Under the pieces are notes generated by a model. The model was not told the origin of the DNA. It ran no database searches and was given only the letters and a program-made list of their open reading frames with translations. Below, piece after piece: positions 97-5,718 of a stretch of DNA of 5,718 nt (positions within the stretch are counted from its first letter, which is position 1; each line of letters begins with the position of its first letter). The translations under genes were made by a program, and so were the position numbers. Origin of the DNA: Paramicrosporidium saccamoebae KSL3 (taxonomy: Eukaryota; Fungi; Cryptomycota); assembly GCA_002794465.1 (NCBI GenBank), contig MTSL01000162.1, positions 1-5,718 on the forward strand. Direction: 5' to 3'.

Positions 97-155
97 TTTT
101 TAAATGTGACGGAACAACTCCGTTAGTGGCAAATGATAAACTCAATGCTATTAAC
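97..155. repeat. Conserved intergenic element, copy 1 (downstream of gene A)
   Basis: Core 124-155 tagtggcaaatgataaactcaatgctattaac matches copies 2 and 3 at 29/32. It is preceded by the shared aatgtga motif. Confidence 0.9.
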
Positions 156-244
156 AACTAATAATAATTGAGAAAACTGTACTCTCTGAATCTAAATTTA
201 ATTTCAGTAGCGGCAAAAAGCCGAGAAGCAATCTTACCGACTAC

Positions 245-658
245 TTATTTATAATCTTCAGAGTCGTAATCACTGTCGCCATTGTCAGTCAATCTTCGGC
301 TTGGCGTCTCCTCGGTGAGCTTTGCAGTTTTTAGCGCACCCAATTGGTGCAATGTCGCTAATCTGGATCCGGGCGTCTCTACCGTAGTTCTCTGCGTGTC
401 CCGCTCCCAGGTGGGTGTGAGCAGTTCCCGCACGTCTAAATGGCTCCGCAAGCCGCATTTCTCGCCGAAAGGTTTTGAATACTCTAACAAGTCGTCCAAT
501 TCCTTCCAATTATCTGGATGTGACAAAGGGTGTGGCGAAAAGGAGCGAGAGCGCAGCTTAGCGAACAACTCGTCGGACTCACTGCCAGAAGAAGAGGCAG
601 CTATGGGGTCAAAGAAAACGAGAGAAAGGGCCAGCCGTGCAAGAGCGCTGTACTTCAT
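245..658 (-). CDS. Gene A: small predicted secreted protein (signal peptide, Ser linker, 65-aa family module, acidic tail)
   Basis: 137-aa ORF. The N-terminus MKYSALARLALSLVFFDPIAA-SSS is signal-peptide-like. It matches gene B at 18/30 N-terminal residues, and residues 45-109 match gene C residues 86-150 at 39/65 without gaps. Conserved upstream and downstream elements flank it. Confidence 0.8.
   Translation of the reverse strand: MKYSALARLALSLVFFDPIAASSSGSESDELFAKLRSRSFSPHPLSHPDNWKELDDLLEYSKPFGEKCGLRSHLDVRELLTPTWERDTQRTTVETPGSRLATLHQLGALKTAKLTEETPSRRLTDNGDSDYDSEDYK
332..526 (-). repeat. Family N-terminal module, copy in gene A (partner 4698-4892)
   Basis: LSHPDNWKEL...VRELLTPTWERDTQRTTVETPGSRLATLHQLGAL versus LSDQENWDEL...VRELLTPIWGWDTQGTTAETPGSRLMTLYKLGAL. 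Confidence 0.95.
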
Positions 659-697
659 GAGTCAACCAAGGCAGTGGCTTGTGAGGCAGGGGATCAC

Positions 698-730
698 TTT
701 TTAACTGCAACTTCGATACATTCCAATTGG
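698..730 (-). promoter_or_regulatory. Putative core promoter of gene A (TTAA box plus palindromic CCAATTGG)
   Basis: TTTTTAA at 698-704 and TTCCAATTGG at 721-730 lie about 40 and 63 bp upstream of the ATG, with equivalent positions upstream of B and C. Confidence 0.55.
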
Positions 731-913
731 TCGTTGCAGTGCTTTGCGTGTCTATCTATCGCATCATAAGTGTCCCGTGGTGATACAACAGCCTACATAC
801 AGGAGCTCCTTATCGTGACACTTTAAGCGAGTGCTCCTTTTATTAAATATCGTCTTCATTTATGAGGCAAGACTCCCCGTCAGATCGTAACGCCCAATGA
901 GAGTTATTAGACC

Positions 914-1060
914 TTAAACATGGCGAGTTGGCTCACCACGTCTCAACAAGTACCACAGACTTTGGCAGACAAGAGAAAGCTTGTTCATTGTGATTTACAT
1001 AGCCCCACAAACGACGTCCGTGATTTACTGAATGGAATAGTTCCATTTCCAAGCATTGCA
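914..1060 (-). pseudogene. Possible decayed fourth unit: degenerate promoter plus 24-aa micro-ORF (914-988)
   Basis: 1047-1078 aligns to the B upstream region 1813-1845. An ATG sits at 988, 59 bp from the degenerate ttccaa. The micro-ORF MNKLSLVCQSLWYLLRRGEPTRHV* has CTT TCT CTT GTC, resembling the LSLV codons of A. Confidence 0.3.
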
Positions 1061-1104
1061 ACTCAGCCAGCTAGTGATCTGGAGACGCAGAGCTATCATC
1101 TTTC

Positions 1105-1167
1105 ACCTATTTAAAATGTGAGGGACCAATTCCATTAGTGGCAAATGATAAAATCCATGCTATTGAC
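1105..1167. repeat. Conserved intergenic element, copy 2 (downstream of gene B)
   Basis: Core 1136-1167 tagtggcaaatgataaaatccatgctattgac is identical to 1921-1952. It is preceded by acctatttaaaatgtga. Confidence 0.95.
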
Positions 1168-1256
1168 ATTTAATAATAGTTTTCTCAACTATATTTTCTG
1201 GACCTAGATCTGGTTTCAGTAATTGCAAAAGACACGCCAGCCACCCTATCGATTAC

Positions 1257-1748
1257 TTATTTGAGATCCTTTGGTTCGTCCTCCTTGTTTCCATTGTTAG
1301 CGGGCTTTGCAACTAGTGCCTTTTCCTTCATGGGCTTTTCGACTTCCGGCTCTCTCAATGTGGTATGGGTGGTTCTAGGTAAATACGCCTTATCGTCTAT
1401 TTCCCGTAGCCATTCCTGTAAGTAGGGGTCTTCGTTGTCCCATGGCCATAGCCGTTTCCGTTGGTCCTGCAGGTGCTCTCGCTGGTGCAGTTGAAGTTCC
1501 CGTTCGTCTTCCTCTCTCCACCCAAATTCCCGTGCCCATTGCCGTTTCCGTTCTTGTTCGGGCTCGCCATATACGTCAAGCGGCGTCAAGTTATTGGCCT
1601 TGTGCTCCCAATTCTCTGGATGTGACGTAGAAGAATCAGATGATGGCTTAGCGGACGAATCGTTGGACTCGCTGCTAGAAGAAGAGGCAGCTATGAGGCC
1701 GACCAGGATGAGAGAAAGGACTAGTTGTGCGAGAATGTTGTACTTCAT
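1257..1748 (-). CDS. Gene B: small predicted secreted protein, paralog of A with a Glu/Arg/Trp-rich core
   Basis: 163-aa ORF. The leader MKYNILAQLVLSLILVGLIAA-SSSS has a good hydrophobic core. It shares the SHP(E/D)NW motif and the C-terminal AL..AK...NG..D.K* pattern with A. Its 3' flank is alignable to that of A. Confidence 0.8.
   Translation of the reverse strand: MKYNILAQLVLSLILVGLIAASSSSSESNDSSAKPSSDSSTSHPENWEHKANNLTPLDVYGEPEQERKRQWAREFGWREEDERELQLHQREHLQDQRKRLWPWDNEDPYLQEWLREIDDKAYLPRTTHTTLREPEVEKPMKEKALVAKPANNGNKEDEPKDLK
1438..1552 (-). repeat. In-frame internal direct repeat in gene B (90-bp spacing)
   Basis: 1438-1462 tcccatggccatagccgtttccgtt versus 1528-1552 tcccgtgcccattgccgtttccgtt (22/25), encoding QRKRLWPWD and ERKRQWARE. 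Confidence 0.75.
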
Positions 1749-1790
1749 GAGTCAGTTGAAGCGGGGCGGCTGGTCAGACAGGCGATCGCT

Positions 1791-1822
1791 CTTAAACCGT
1801 TTTATTGATGCATTCCAATTGG
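1791..1822 (-). promoter_or_regulatory. Putative core promoter of gene B
   Basis: CTTAAA at 1791-1796 and TTCCAATTGG at 1813-1822 lie about 44 and 65 bp upstream of the ATG. Confidence 0.55.
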
Positions 1823-1888
1823 TTGCATCTCAACCAGCCATTGATTCAGCCTACTTACTTACTGATGAGTCCAGAGTTATAGTCTTCC

Positions 1889-1952
1889 ACCTATTTAGAA
1901 TGTGACTGGCCCAGATCCAGTAGTGGCAAATGATAAAATCCATGCTATTGAC
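1889..1952. repeat. Conserved intergenic element, copy 3 (downstream of gene C)
   Basis: Core 1921-1952 is identical to 1136-1167. It is preceded by acctatttagaatgtga. Confidence 0.95.
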
Positions 1953-1994
1953 TATTTATGACTACTCATTGATTGTTCAGTGTCCACTGCTAAC

Positions 1995-4900
1995 TTAAAA
2001 GGTCGCCTCTGGGTCCTCGTCCTCGGCCGAATTGGAGGCATTGTTGGGCTGGTCGTTTTGAGCCGGTTCCGGCTGTTGCGTCGTCTCCACGTCCATAAGC
2101 GATGCAGAGTGGCTGTTGGTGAAAATCACCATGGCCCGGACAACATTGTAGGAATGTTGGGGTACGACATAGAGGAGAGAGGCACAAGTGCTGCTGGGGT
2201 AGGTATCATAATCGTCATGGACGAGTAAATGGGGATCAAAGACCTCTTCCGGCCCCAGCTCCAGAATTGCGTGCTGAAGAGCAGCAACCCTGCTGACGAG
2301 CGTGCAAAACTCTACTCCCGCGCGGATCACATAGTCGGGGCTGTCGTTCAGCTCCTCAGTTACTGCTTTAGTGTCCGATTTCTGTGGCGGCTGTTGCTCC
2401 TCTGTGGTCATTGAATCCACAATCTCCGGCGCCGCTTCCTTCATCTCCTGTGATTCCATATCGAAATCCGATTGTTCAACTGCAGGCACACCCTCCCAGT
2501 CGCCCAAGGAAGCGACTCCGTGACTGGTTGGCTCCACCTCTTCTTGCATGGAATTGGAGGAAGCACGGACCGTCTGATCCTGATTCAGCTCTAGATCCTC
2601 CCAATGGAACAGATTCAACCTTGCCGACTTGTGAGGATTCCTGGTGACATTAATGATCAGGCAATCGGGCGTCAGGACTGTGGAGGAAGAGCCAGTCCAG
2701 ACAGTCAACATTTTGGCCAACTGAGTAGTGGTGAGGGATTCGATAAAGGTACGGATGCAGTCGTGTAAAAGAATTTTATGACCCGGATAGAACGAGTCCA
2801 CCAATGGATTCTCCACATTCGAGAATTTGATGGCGTCAATCACGTCCTTGGCCGTCAGCAAGGGAGCATTGAAGGTGTCGAGCAATACGGAGGGCCTGCG
2901 CATAAATCTGATGCCGGCAACCCGGAAGGTTTTGTTCAGATAAAAGGCATAGTTGCGGAAGAACTCAAGGAAGCCTCTTCGGATCATCTCGTGATATTCT
3001 TCGAAAAATTTGGTGATATTGTCAAAAGTGCAACCAGAGAGATCTGCGGCTTCACAGTCCCCCAGGTCGAGCAGATTGGAAGGCTTGCCAAGGGTGGTAA
3101 AGGTTATGCCTTTTACTGTGGGGAGATACATGTCATCAGTGTAAAAGTCTTTGCGTTCGTAGCCTTGCATCAGCTTTGTGTTAATGAATTCTTTCACTCG
3201 GTCCTTATAAGTCTTGTCGTAGTATTCCATAACCGCTTCCTCGTCATCTGCATAGGGTAAGAGAGTGTAAAAGGGAAGATCGAGGGCAAAAGTTGCACGG
3301 AGGTTCTTCTGGATGGCCTTTCCCGTAAACATGCCTGCTATCAATCCTGCCTCTCCGCCCATCAACCAGGAGAACCGCTTAACGATGCCATTGACTTCAG
3401 AGAGCGGACAAATCAGTTCCTTCTCGATCCTTTTGAGGAATTGATCTATAAGTGCACGGCTTGGTCCGTCCTGATCTATCGCCTGAGGCACTTTGAGCAT
3501 CAGCTGGGAATTTGCAAATTCATCGGGATGGTTTGTCAAAAAGGCAACGGTCTCTTCGAGGTTGTGGCCATGTACCATGTCGTATTTTTCAATCTTCCAA
3601 GTGGGCTTGTTCTTAGTGTTGTGGGTGACTATGGCAACGGCGCGCAGATCATTCTCATTCTTCACCAACGCATAGCAAATTGGCGCTACATCGGGTTTCC
3701 CCTTCATAGCATGCAACACGGAGCGACGTAGATGCTTCTTCCCCCGGAAAAGATCTTCGATTGGGCAGATGCAGTCAATGACTCCCTGGACGTTGGAACG
3801 CATCATAGTGGAACACAGCTTGAGAGCCATAGTGGGCGGGGTCAGCGATGTTGAGTATTCATTTTTGCGGCTATTGACGTACTGGCTCAGATCTTTCATC
3901 GAGTTCACAAACACTGAATTCAGCAAATGGTGATACTTTTCCAAATCGGCTGGGCTGGAAGGATGCAGCAGCAAAAAGTCTACATACCACGAGTTTTTGT
4001 CAAAATTGCCCGGCAGATTGTCTGTAGCTTCCACCAGGTCGTAAAAATCGTCAAAGGAGGGGGCCGGGAGTGGAAATGTTGACTCGCAGAGCAGACAGGA
4101 CGTCACACTGGTTACCAACGATGCATCCAGGGTCGTCTGCACCTGCGTTAGGATCTCTGTCATTTCTGGCGACCAGTGCGCCAGAAGAGAGTGGACCAAT
4201 CCCAGATTTGTGGTTTGATAAATCTTGACGCGACACTCATACAAAGTTTGCACAATTTTTCCCAACGTGGCACTTTCGTATGTATCGTGTTCCGTCAACA
4301 ATAGCTTCAGGAACATTTCGGTACGCAGCGCCAACACTGCTAGGAACACTGAGTCTTCCTCCGTCATTCCTGAAATCACATGCAATAGACACTCTACAAG
4401 CTTTCCTCCCAGGTCCGAGCTCTTTGAGGCCAGGTATGCCATGACATTCGAATCGAAAATGTTCCAATTAAGATTTTTGGCTGATCGGAATAGTTTATGG
4501 TCCAGAAGACGACGCAGAGTGCGACGACTAGCCTCCGTGGGACGTGGCAGTTCGCTGTAAGCACCTTGCATGGCAATGTACTCGCTCAGCACTTCCGGCT
4601 TAAAGGTCGCCCAATGATTGAGCGTCTTTAGACAAATTCCCTCGAACGGCTCCAGTGAATCCTCAATTGTCACCGCATCCCATGCCTTTACGTGGCTTAG
4701 CGCGCCCAGTTTGTACAATGTCATCAATCTGGATCCGGGTGTCTCTGCCGTAGTTCCCTGCGTGTCCCACCCCCAGATGGGTGTGAGCAGTTCCCGCACA
4801 TGAACACCGCTCAACACTTCGCCCTTTTCGCTAAACGCCGCTGAGCACTCTGCCAAGCCGGTTAATTCGTCCCAATTTTCCTGGTCCGACAACTTGGCCA

Positions 4901-5135
4901 GGCTCATGACACCCCCAATAGACGGAATATCATGTTGTCGGAAGAGCGTCACACAGGACAGCTTCAACATTACTTCGTCGTCTGCGCCGAGCGCCTTAAT
5001 TGGGGGAATGGTTGACTGATAATCGTTCGCGGCATATCCCGTAGTAGTGGTGGTGGTCGTAGTGGTCGTTGAAGCCGCCGCAGAATCAACGAGAGCCAAG
5101 ATAATGGCCAGTCGCGACAATGCGCCCTGCTTCAT
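1995..5135 (-). CDS. Gene C: large predicted secreted protein with C-terminal divergent HECT-type E3 ubiquitin ligase domain
   Basis: Uninterrupted 1050-codon ORF (track start 5147). The second ATG at 5135 (MKQGALSRLAIILALVDSAAA-S) aligns with the MKY starts of A and B and gives the same promoter spacing, so it is preferred. It carries the family module and HECT motifs listed in the domain feature. Confidence 0.9.
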   Translation of the reverse strand: MKQGALSRLAIILALVDSAAASTTTTTTTTTTGYAANDYQSTIPPIKALGADDEVMLKLSCVTLFRQHDIPSIGGVMSLAKLSDQENWDELTGLAECSAAFSEKGEVLSGVHVRELLTPIWGWDTQGTTAETPGSRLMTLYKLGALSHVKAWDAVTIEDSLEPFEGICLKTLNHWATFKPEVLSEYIAMQGAYSELPRPTEASRRTLRRLLDHKLFRSAKNLNWNIFDSNVMAYLASKSSDLGGKLVECLLHVISGMTEEDSVFLAVLALRTEMFLKLLLTEHDTYESATLGKIVQTLYECRVKIYQTTNLGLVHSLLAHWSPEMTEILTQVQTTLDASLVTSVTSCLLCESTFPLPAPSFDDFYDLVEATDNLPGNFDKNSWYVDFLLLHPSSPADLEKYHHLLNSVFVNSMKDLSQYVNSRKNEYSTSLTPPTMALKLCSTMMRSNVQGVIDCICPIEDLFRGKKHLRRSVLHAMKGKPDVAPICYALVKNENDLRAVAIVTHNTKNKPTWKIEKYDMVHGHNLEETVAFLTNHPDEFANSQLMLKVPQAIDQDGPSRALIDQFLKRIEKELICPLSEVNGIVKRFSWLMGGEAGLIAGMFTGKAIQKNLRATFALDLPFYTLLPYADDEEAVMEYYDKTYKDRVKEFINTKLMQGYERKDFYTDDMYLPTVKGITFTTLGKPSNLLDLGDCEAADLSGCTFDNITKFFEEYHEMIRRGFLEFFRNYAFYLNKTFRVAGIRFMRRPSVLLDTFNAPLLTAKDVIDAIKFSNVENPLVDSFYPGHKILLHDCIRTFIESLTTTQLAKMLTVWTGSSSTVLTPDCLIINVTRNPHKSARLNLFHWEDLELNQDQTVRASSNSMQEEVEPTSHGVASLGDWEGVPAVEQSDFDMESQEMKEAAPEIVDSMTTEEQQPPQKSDTKAVTEELNDSPDYVIRAGVEFCTLVSRVAALQHAILELGPEEVFDPHLLVHDDYDTYPSSTCASLLYVVPQHSYNVVRAMVIFTNSHSASLMDVETTQQPEPAQNDQPNNASNSAEDEDPEATF
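2091..3578 (-). other. HECT-like domain of gene C (about residues 524-1019 of the 1050-aa ORF)
   Basis: Colinear by-eye matches to the HECT consensus: NLEETVAFL..QLMLKV..AIDQDGPSRALI (ILED..L..EF.GE.G.D.GG..REFF), AGMFTGKAIQKNLRATFALDLPFYTLL (G...GKA.......L.....FYK.LL), EMIRRGFLEFF (..FR.GF), LTAKDVIDAIKF (ID..D.....Y), FIESLTTTQLAKMLTVWTGSS (....FT.E.....L.FVTGS), and YPSSTCASLLYVVPQHS (LP.AHTCFN.L.LP.Y). The Cys codon TGT is at 2184-2186. Confidence 0.8.
4698..4892 (-). repeat. Family N-terminal module, copy in gene C (partner 332-526 in gene A)
   Basis: 195-bp in-frame, ungapped homology. DNA near-identity is visible directly, e.g. aatctggatccggg(c/t)gtctct(a/g)ccgtagtt and ggtgtgagcagttcccgcac in both copies. 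Confidence 0.95.
5040..5069 (-). repeat. Poly-Thr (10 x ACN) linker after the signal peptide of gene C
   Basis: ACG ACC ACT ACG ACC ACC ACC ACT ACT ACG, occupying the position of the Ser run in A and B. Confidence 0.9.
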
Positions 5136-5172
5136 TGCTCCCACCAAGATGGCAAATTGCCCCTAGTCGGCC

Positions 5173-5230
5173 TTTTAATTACTAGATCGATGCATTTCCA
5201 TTGGTTAAACCAATCTTGAATTCCAATTGG
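5173..5230 (-). promoter_or_regulatory. Putative core promoter of gene C with two CCAAT-type sites
   Basis: TTTTAA at 5173-5178, the variant TTCCATTGG at 5196-5204 (about 61 bp from ATG 5135, preceded by gatgcat as in B), and a perfect TTCCAATTGG at 5221-5230. Confidence 0.55.
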
Positions 5231-5240
5231 CTACAACTGT

Positions 5241-5360
5241 AGTGCCTTTTAATGTCTTTTAGGGTCTGGTAGTGTCAAGTAGTGTCTTTTAGTGTTTCCC
5301 AGTGGTCCGTAGTGTTCTACAATGCCCCACAGTGCTCTAGAGTGGCCTGTAATATCTCCT
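5241..5360. repeat. Degenerate tandem repeat, 12 units of exactly 10 bp, consensus about AGTGTCTNNT
   Basis: Units: agtgcctttt aatgtctttt agggtctggt agtgtcaagt agtgtctttt agtgtttccc agtggtccgt agtgttctac aatgccccac agtgctctag agtggcctgt aatatctcct. All 12 start with A, 8 start with AGTG, and there are no indels. Confidence 0.85.
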
Positions 5361-5572: not shown

Positions 5573-5718
5573 TTACATGCCGTCCTTGTTTGTCAAGGAG
5601 TAGTTACTGGACGGACCGATCAAGGGGGTGTATTTCTCAAATTCAGCTCTGCTCGGAGGATACAGAGACCAAAACTCGTAGTACCAGAGGGTGCGATCGC
5701 ATCCTTGCAGCAGGTGGT
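5573..5718 (-). CDS. Probable 3' end of an upstream gene of unknown function (partial)
   Basis: The frame is open from the window edge: HLLQGCDRTLWYYEFWSLYPPSRAEFEKYTPLIGPSSNYSLTNKDGM* (TAA at 5573-5575), with AATAAA about 50 bp downstream. It is only 47 codons long and no family was recognised. Confidence 0.45.
   Translation of the reverse strand, partial: HLLQGCDRTLWYYEFWSLYPPSRAEFEKYTPLIGPSSNYSLTNKDGM

Follow-up and report, generated by a model that had tools for sequence, protein, structure and literature searches.

A short gene, very probably a truncated paralog, in an array of putative HECT-type ligase genes of Paramicrosporidium saccamoebae

We analyzed a stretch of 5718 nucleotides (nt) from Paramicrosporidium saccamoebae, a rozellid and obligate intranuclear parasite of amoebae (genome paper PMC5701793). 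This stretch, hereafter the window, is one end of the 11,791-nt contig MTSL01000162.1 of assembly GCA_002794465.1, and it holds three open reading frames (ORFs), A, B and C, all on the minus strand. A segment of 65 residues ending in LGAL, shared by the short gene A and the long gene C, had been predicted to be an exchangeable export or host-translocation module, with LGAL as the junction at which payloads are swapped. Our results make it very probable that C is instead a complete member of a HECT-type family, that the module is the start of its N-terminal region, and that A is a truncated derivative of the gene array, with a mosaic make-up. Since the cassette idea fails, the finding as posed is an ordinary one, namely a truncated paralog in an array that undergoes duplication and loss. 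The two genes and their modules are located as follows:

245..658, minus strand: gene A, 137 amino acids (aa), with a signal peptide, vestigial N-terminus, module and acidic tail (ORF list, BLASTP, tblastn)
332..526, minus strand: module in A, residues 45-109
1995..5135, minus strand: gene C, complete member, 1046 aa from the ATG (ORF list; the same 1046-aa protein is in the public assembly)
4698..4892, minus strand: module in C, residues 82-146 in the 1046-aa numbering (86-150 in the 1050-aa numbering)

The open frame of C extends to a TTG at 5147, which gives 1050 aa, and in this numbering residues 86-150 of C match residues 45-109 of A without gaps at 39 of 65 positions. The 60% identity given originally is therefore exact, and the best ungapped match in 200 shuffles did not exceed 17/65. 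The two proteins find each other in BLASTP with E = 1e-21, and the DNA of the shared stretch is 75.5% identical over 184 nt. The lengths of what follows LGAL, 28 residues in A and 900 in C, were likewise recounted as originally given. The ungapped block of 65 residues is real, but residue 45 is not where the similarity starts: A and C are already homologous at Met1 and remain so across the signal peptide, in an alignment with two gaps (BLASTP, 58 of 150 positions identical), so that the left edge of the module is not sharp. Nor is the module limited to A and C, because copies D, E and F on the same contig carry it too.

To assess what follows the module across the family, a query profile comprising C, D and the N-terminus of A was searched against 1.84 billion representative proteins, a library clustered at 50% identity, in which close paralogs are hence hidden. 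This search recovered 45 relatives at E <= 1e-3, 31 of them at E <= 1e-10. Nearly all are unnamed metagenome proteins, and one is a second P. saccamoebae fragment, PSACC_00312. In a local domain map we counted 19 carriers of the module (18 search matches and P0047, a longer cluster member), 17 of which show protein-level homology past the junction into the same body, the exceptions being A and P0028. The complete carriers all share the same HECT-like C-terminal region. P0028 (119 aa) was considered as a second module-only gene and rejected: it owes its length to one in-frame stop on its contig, past which the homology to C goes on in the same frame up to residue 307. Consequently, A is the sole carrier among the 19 whose homology stops at LGAL, and the other 18 of 18 continue into the same N-terminal domain.

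The conservation profile is equally uninterrupted. Among the long carriers the module has a mean pairwise identity of 0.288, compared with 0.237 for the sequence that precedes it, 0.256 for the 65 columns that follow and 0.239 for the remainder; there is no drop at LGAL and therefore no boundary there. The original prediction had proposed a profile search with a tabulation of what comes after LGAL, and had named full-length HECT paralogs as an outcome that would refute it; the search yielded one body and no variable payloads. It had also drawn a parallel in logic to the Crinklers (CRNs) of oomycetes, in which a single type of N-terminus is found before many unrelated C-terminal domains, with a recombination motif at the join. 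CRN effectors and the present family have in common that they are parasite proteins, secreted or, here, putatively secreted, with a conserved N-terminal part. However, the 19 carriers provide no set of unrelated C-termini meeting at a common breakpoint, and neither a linker nor a fall in conservation marks the junction, which in the AlphaFold2 (AF2) model of C lies in a segment with a predicted local distance difference test score (pLDDT) above 90 over residues 140-200. The parallel thus breaks down, as every other carrier has the same continuation and conservation stays steady at LGAL.

A different kind of modularity is seen in the family. The same HECT region occurs behind different signal-peptide N-termini that lack the module in nine metagenome proteins (P0020, P0022, P0026, P0027, P0030, P0034, P0036, P0045 and P0046), whose N-termini look repeat-rich, and one member of the alignment matches the BspA-type leucine-rich repeat (LRR) family of Pfam. 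It is therefore the N-terminal region as a whole, of helical or LRR type, that the family varies before a constant HECT domain, in contrast to the CRNs. Conservation in the helical version starts with the 65-residue module, which is inherited vertically and not exchangeable. Given that the signal-peptide-like start is also present in members whose N-terminus is of the LRR type, export would not depend on the module.

The sequence and predicted structure of C characterize it as a divergent HECT ligase with a signal-peptide-like N-terminus, and its parts are delineated below:

5070..5135, minus strand: signal-peptide-like N-terminus, residues 1-22 (maximal 10-residue Kyte-Doolittle mean 2.39)
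5040..5069, minus strand: run of ten threonines, residues 23-32, directly after the signal peptide (translation, tandem repeat finder; low confidence in AF2)
3636..4973, minus strand: helical N-terminal region, residues ~55-500 (AF2; colinear with D and 15 other long carriers)
2106..3623, minus strand: divergent HECT domain, residues ~505-1010 (family profile, Pfam, Foldseek)
3456-3476, minus strand: DQDGPSR motif, residues 554-560
2685-2699, minus strand: WTGSS motif, residues 813-817
2346..2627, minus strand: acidic insertion of ~95 residues in the HECT C-lobe, residues 837-930 (pLDDT 28-42; rich in E, S, D and Q)
2184..2186, minus strand: Cys984 (SSTC), candidate catalytic cysteine (family-profile alignment to the xTC of AREL1)

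Single sequences do not reveal this relationship. A Pfam search of A, C, D, F and the C-terminal 301 residues of C gave no match, a sequence search of the PDB with C alone, D alone or a three-sequence profile gave none either, and a word-index protein search with C returned C only. Membership in the HECT class emerges at the level of the family, not from C or D alone: the Pfam HECT model (PF00632) matches 6 of 43 family members with a best E of 2.1e-5, and the profile of the 43 sequences retrieves from the PDB the HECT domains of AREL1 (E 1.7e-8), TOM1 (1.2e-6) and HUWE1 (1.7e-4, over ~300 residues). These matches run through three stretches, DxGGPxR, xTGSS and xTC. The terminal cysteine appears as SSTC in C, as TTC in D and as [ST][ST]C in most complete relatives.

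The AF2 model of C, computed from the family alignment, has a mean pLDDT of 81.5 and a predicted template modelling score of 0.79. It predicts disorder at residues 1-48, helices at 55-500, a mixed alpha/beta region at 505-1010 that adopts the bilobed HECT fold, a disordered segment at 837-930 within it, and a disordered tail. A variable insert occupies the same place as this last segment in D and other members. The helices of the module (pLDDT 85-97) run on without a break into the remainder of the N-terminal region. When the model was compared with the PDB using Foldseek, the best 50 matches were all HECT E3 ligases (E 4e-7 to 9e-4, probability 0.99-1.00). The TM-scores are modest, 0.3-0.48 for isolated HECT domains when normalized by the target, as would be expected from mobile lobes and an insertion. 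The HECT-like nature that had been ascribed to C is thus borne out at the family and structure level by profile and Foldseek, though Pfam is blind to C itself.

We then considered how A relates to such a complete gene. It keeps the upstream box of the family (see below), the signal peptide, the module and the 3' flank, while ~900 residues, or ~2.7 kb, of body are missing; in addition, 12 residues are deleted in the conserved segment that precedes the module. The tblastn search downstream of A detected no remnant of the body in any frame, and its 3' flank is that of the family. An intron or hidden exon after A was rejected, there being no family homology downstream in any frame. The tail of A is located at:

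248..331, minus strand: 28-residue tail of A, its last ~14 codons homologous to the end of B (repeat D2), of low confidence in AF2

Comparison of successive segments of A with its two neighbors revealed a mosaic:

Signal peptide, codons 1-24: identity to B 78%, to C 57%
Codons 25-48: identity to B 64%, to C 50%
Module, codons 49-109: identity to B 43%, to C 75%
Last 15 codons, 124-138 including the stop: identity to B 64%, to C 47%
First 150 nt of the 3' flank: identity to B 72%, to C 21% (105 gap columns)

The contrasts between these segments are significant (Fisher p 4e-5 to 2e-10), and recombination or gene conversion between neighbors in the array is the simplest account of the pattern. 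A has probably arisen by recombination or deletion within the array, and the pattern points to gene conversion or unequal crossing-over between neighboring copies. The original prediction had entertained a truncated paralog as its alternative, and the family flanks, the missing body and the mosaic identity pattern all agree with it.

Between the modules of A and C the ratio of nonsynonymous to synonymous substitution (dN/dS) is 0.70, with a dS of 0.42, and there are 8 unique amino-acid changes on the A branch versus 1-2 on the C branch (p 0.04-0.11). The commonest residue at 25 conserved positions of the module is kept at 14 in A, 19 in C and 14 in D. The frame of A survives neutral change in the module in 10-20% of simulations; its survival was accordingly rejected as a sign of selection, since this neutral expectation (0.1-0.2) leaves the open frame without evidential value. 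A word-index search with A in 5.8 billion protein clusters returned only A itself, with no ortholog and no short relative, and scans of JGI metagenome contigs encountered no A-like locus. In the AF2 model of A alone the module is helical (pLDDT 77-90) and the tail is of low confidence, and a Foldseek search of this model against the PDB gave nothing with an E below 3.

Between A and C lies gene B:

1257..1748, minus strand: gene B, 163 aa, in which the signal peptide of the family is followed by a charged, internally repeated middle and a 3' end like that of the family (BLASTP, hhalign)

The 5' and 3' ends of B are common to A. In BLASTP the match between A and B covers residues 1-52 only, and the hhalign alignment of B to the family covers residues 1-28 only. 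As the latter match is confined to the signal peptide, B was rejected as a carrier of the module. Its middle has no detectable homology to the module or to database proteins, and a word-index search with B in the 5.8 billion clusters returned only B itself. The internal repeat in this middle has a spacing of 90 nt, and the origin of the middle is unexplained.

The genes also share elements in their flanks. A 19-nt box containing CCAAT has 5 matches on the contig against 0 expected, and these lie 51-74 nt before the ATG in F, E, C, B and A; it was found neither before D nor in another P. saccamoebae contig. This box is a candidate for a family-specific promoter element. A further element of ~52-87 nt, 77-87% identical among the 3' flanks of C, B and A, could be a common signal for 3' processing or the edge of a duplication unit. 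Their positions are:

5186..5204, minus strand: upstream box of C, 51-69 nt before the ATG
1804..1822, minus strand: upstream box of B
712..730, minus strand: upstream box of A
L001 484-502 and 4806-4824: upstream boxes of F and E
1908..1959, minus strand: 3'-flank element of C (direct-repeat family D4)
1123..1174, minus strand: 3'-flank element of B
111..162, minus strand: 3'-flank element of A

Upstream of C there is also a 10-nt tandem repeat of 5.6 copies (5240-5295).

Several explanations of A compete with its being a truncated derivative. The abrupt end of the A-C similarity at LGAL, the fact that the module is the part of A and C most alike in DNA, and the ability of the A module to form helices alone in AF2 speak for an autonomous export or translocation domain, which would stand alone in A and be joined at LGAL to a HECT payload in C. 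However, we consider this highly improbable: the sequence after the junction is kept in 18/18 other carriers, conservation does not drop there, LGAL ends a helix inside a continuous high-confidence region of the model of C, family members devoid of the module have signal peptides, B combines the common signal peptide with no detectable module, and no fold match in the PDB ties the module to a known translocation domain. An artefact of assembly, in which A is a chimeric or collapsed join of reads from family copies, would fit the location of A 244 nt from a contig end, the two runs of N in the scaffold, the cutting of F by the other contig end and the combination of B-like and C-like parts in A. 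Against this, all segments of A differ by 22% or more from each of the other copies on the contig, so that A was not stitched from the copies seen here, its frame is continuous, and its flanks hold the family elements in the expected order. Taken together, these features leave such an artefact a very slight chance, the lowest that we would assign to any of the explanations.

A further proposal is that A, and perhaps also B, works as a short secreted protein: as a piece of the tip of the N-terminal region it would compete with C for a partner, as a decoy or dominant-negative regulator, and would be co-regulated with C via the upstream box. In its favor, the ORF of A is intact and includes a signal peptide, the box and the family 3' flank accompany it, its dN/dS is 0.70, there are two short genes with the same ends, and the isolated module is predicted to be helical. 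On the other hand, relatives of A or B were not found in the 5.8e9 protein clusters and no A-like locus was found in the JGI metagenome contigs, neutral survival of the module frame is as frequent as 0.1-0.2, the A branch is accelerated in amino-acid change with loss of conserved Cys, His and Trp positions, and the 12-residue deletion falls in the conserved segment before the module. We therefore regard this proposal as unlikely. A related version, in which A and B are retained secreted derivatives under the same box and A tunes, or competes for, partner binding by host-directed HECT ligases, appears slightly more doubtful still. Most likely, A would be a decaying or functionless by-product of turnover in the array.

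The interpretation of A as a truncated derivative of a HECT-family array has to accommodate observations that weigh against it. The frame of A is intact, its signal peptide and upstream box are kept and dN/dS is below 1, and its module is predicted by AF2 to form helices alone with a pLDDT of 77-90. Furthermore, D, which is complete, also has 14/25 of the commonest residues, and hence the divergence of A is not extreme. B is likewise short and has both ends in common with A, and the short form was therefore duplicated or retained. By a rough bit-score estimate, module-only relatives below ~35% identity would probably be missed by the profile search at the E-value cutoff used. The two runs of N in the scaffold and the position of both contig ends in or next to family copies mean that the local assembly is not fully trustworthy. 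As regards function, secretion is judged from hydrophobicity alone, and the equivalence of Cys984 to the catalytic cysteine draws on a weak stretch of the profile and on conservation.

A hydrophobic N-terminal core was observed in A, B, C, D and 25 of 43 Met-started proteins scanned, hydrophobicity being the sole property used. The full-length proteins would enter the secretory pathway and reach the host, where they would draw on the E2~ubiquitin of the host through the candidate Cys984, with the N-terminal region selecting the host proteins to be modified.

Comparison with known systems helps to place the family. With the eukaryotic HECT E3s (AREL1, Tom1/HUWE1, E6AP, HACE1 and the NEDD4 family) it shares the bilobed C-terminal domain with the DxGGPxR, xTGSS and xTC motifs and, ahead of this domain, an extensive and mostly helical N-terminal region that is specific to the family. 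It differs from them in a divergence so great that Pfam HECT scores neither C nor D, in the signal-peptide-like N-terminus, poly-Thr linker and ~95-residue disordered acidic C-lobe insertion of C, and in its expansion in local gene arrays in a parasite. To our knowledge, signal peptides are absent from canonical HECT ligases, which reside in the cytosol or the nucleus. SopA of Salmonella and NleL of E. coli are type III-secreted effectors that are only structurally HECT-like. The proposed likeness to C would be that of an E3 which depends on a cysteine and which a pathogen encodes and exports to act upon ubiquitination in its host, whereas the fold and motifs of C relate it to eukaryotic HECT proteins and its export would take the eukaryotic secretory pathway; neither SopA nor NleL is among the best 50 Foldseek matches of C. 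Microsporidia, the sister group of the rozellids, have lineage-specific large signal-peptide families, such as NemLGF of Nematocida and InterB of Encephalitozoon. These, too, are expanded, fast-evolving and clustered, with fragments and truncated copies, but they are not HECT ligases, and the likeness lies in this general description.

P. saccamoebae and its uncultured relatives from metagenomes thus have an expanded, clustered, signal-peptide HECT-type family that is mostly beyond recognition by Pfam. The genome paper (PMC5701793) makes no mention of HECT, ubiquitin or secreted proteins, and no published description of a family of secreted HECT proteins, whether from rozellids or from microsporidia, turned up in a literature search. 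If the proteins do reach the host, they would be effectors by which one eukaryote hijacks the ubiquitin system of another. The family also provides a concrete case of a HECT scaffold re-equipped with helical or LRR-type N-terminal regions.

The array itself extends beyond the window, whose border directly adjoins a run of N. In tblastn searches of the whole contig with A-D, six family copies were detected on its 11.8 kb, in the order F, D, E, C, B, A. Copy D (PSACC_02459) is complete with 1052 aa and aligns with C over ~994 residues at 25% identity, straight through the LGAL position. Copy F, which lies on the opposite strand, is incomplete because the other end of the contig cuts through it, and copy E, between D and C, has a GTG start and is broken by two scaffold gaps (runs of N). 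In both E and F the homology to the family runs beyond the LGAL position. One piece of E reaches into the window, and its remainder lies outside:

5615..5698, minus strand: last visible piece of E, an incompletely assembled paralog upstream of C (weak tblastn match to C residues 379-406, E = 0.008)

We did not call E a pseudogene because of the two assembly gaps and the GTG start, and the idea of a demonstrable pseudogene was rejected as the frame changes fall at the two N runs. F and E flank D as inverted copies of each other, with 96% identity over 325 nt (L001 1-557 and 4769-5290), and a mis-assembly or a recent rearrangement may have affected the scaffold here. A tRNA scan found none, and a scan for bacterial promoters and terminators, uninformative for a eukaryote, was blank.

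Elsewhere in P. saccamoebae, PSACC_00312 (293 aa; L002 1748-2629, MTSL01000034.1) represents a second kind of family fragment gene, in which a signal peptide of its own is fused to the D-like C-terminal part only, without the xTGSS motif and without the cysteine. In JGI metagenome 3300036987, two full-length family members stand in tandem (L003 6054-13108). Their source is an uncultured compact eukaryote, apparently intron-poor and with 45% GC; housekeeping genes adjoin the pair, and immediately upstream of it there is an unassigned gene of 1350 aa.

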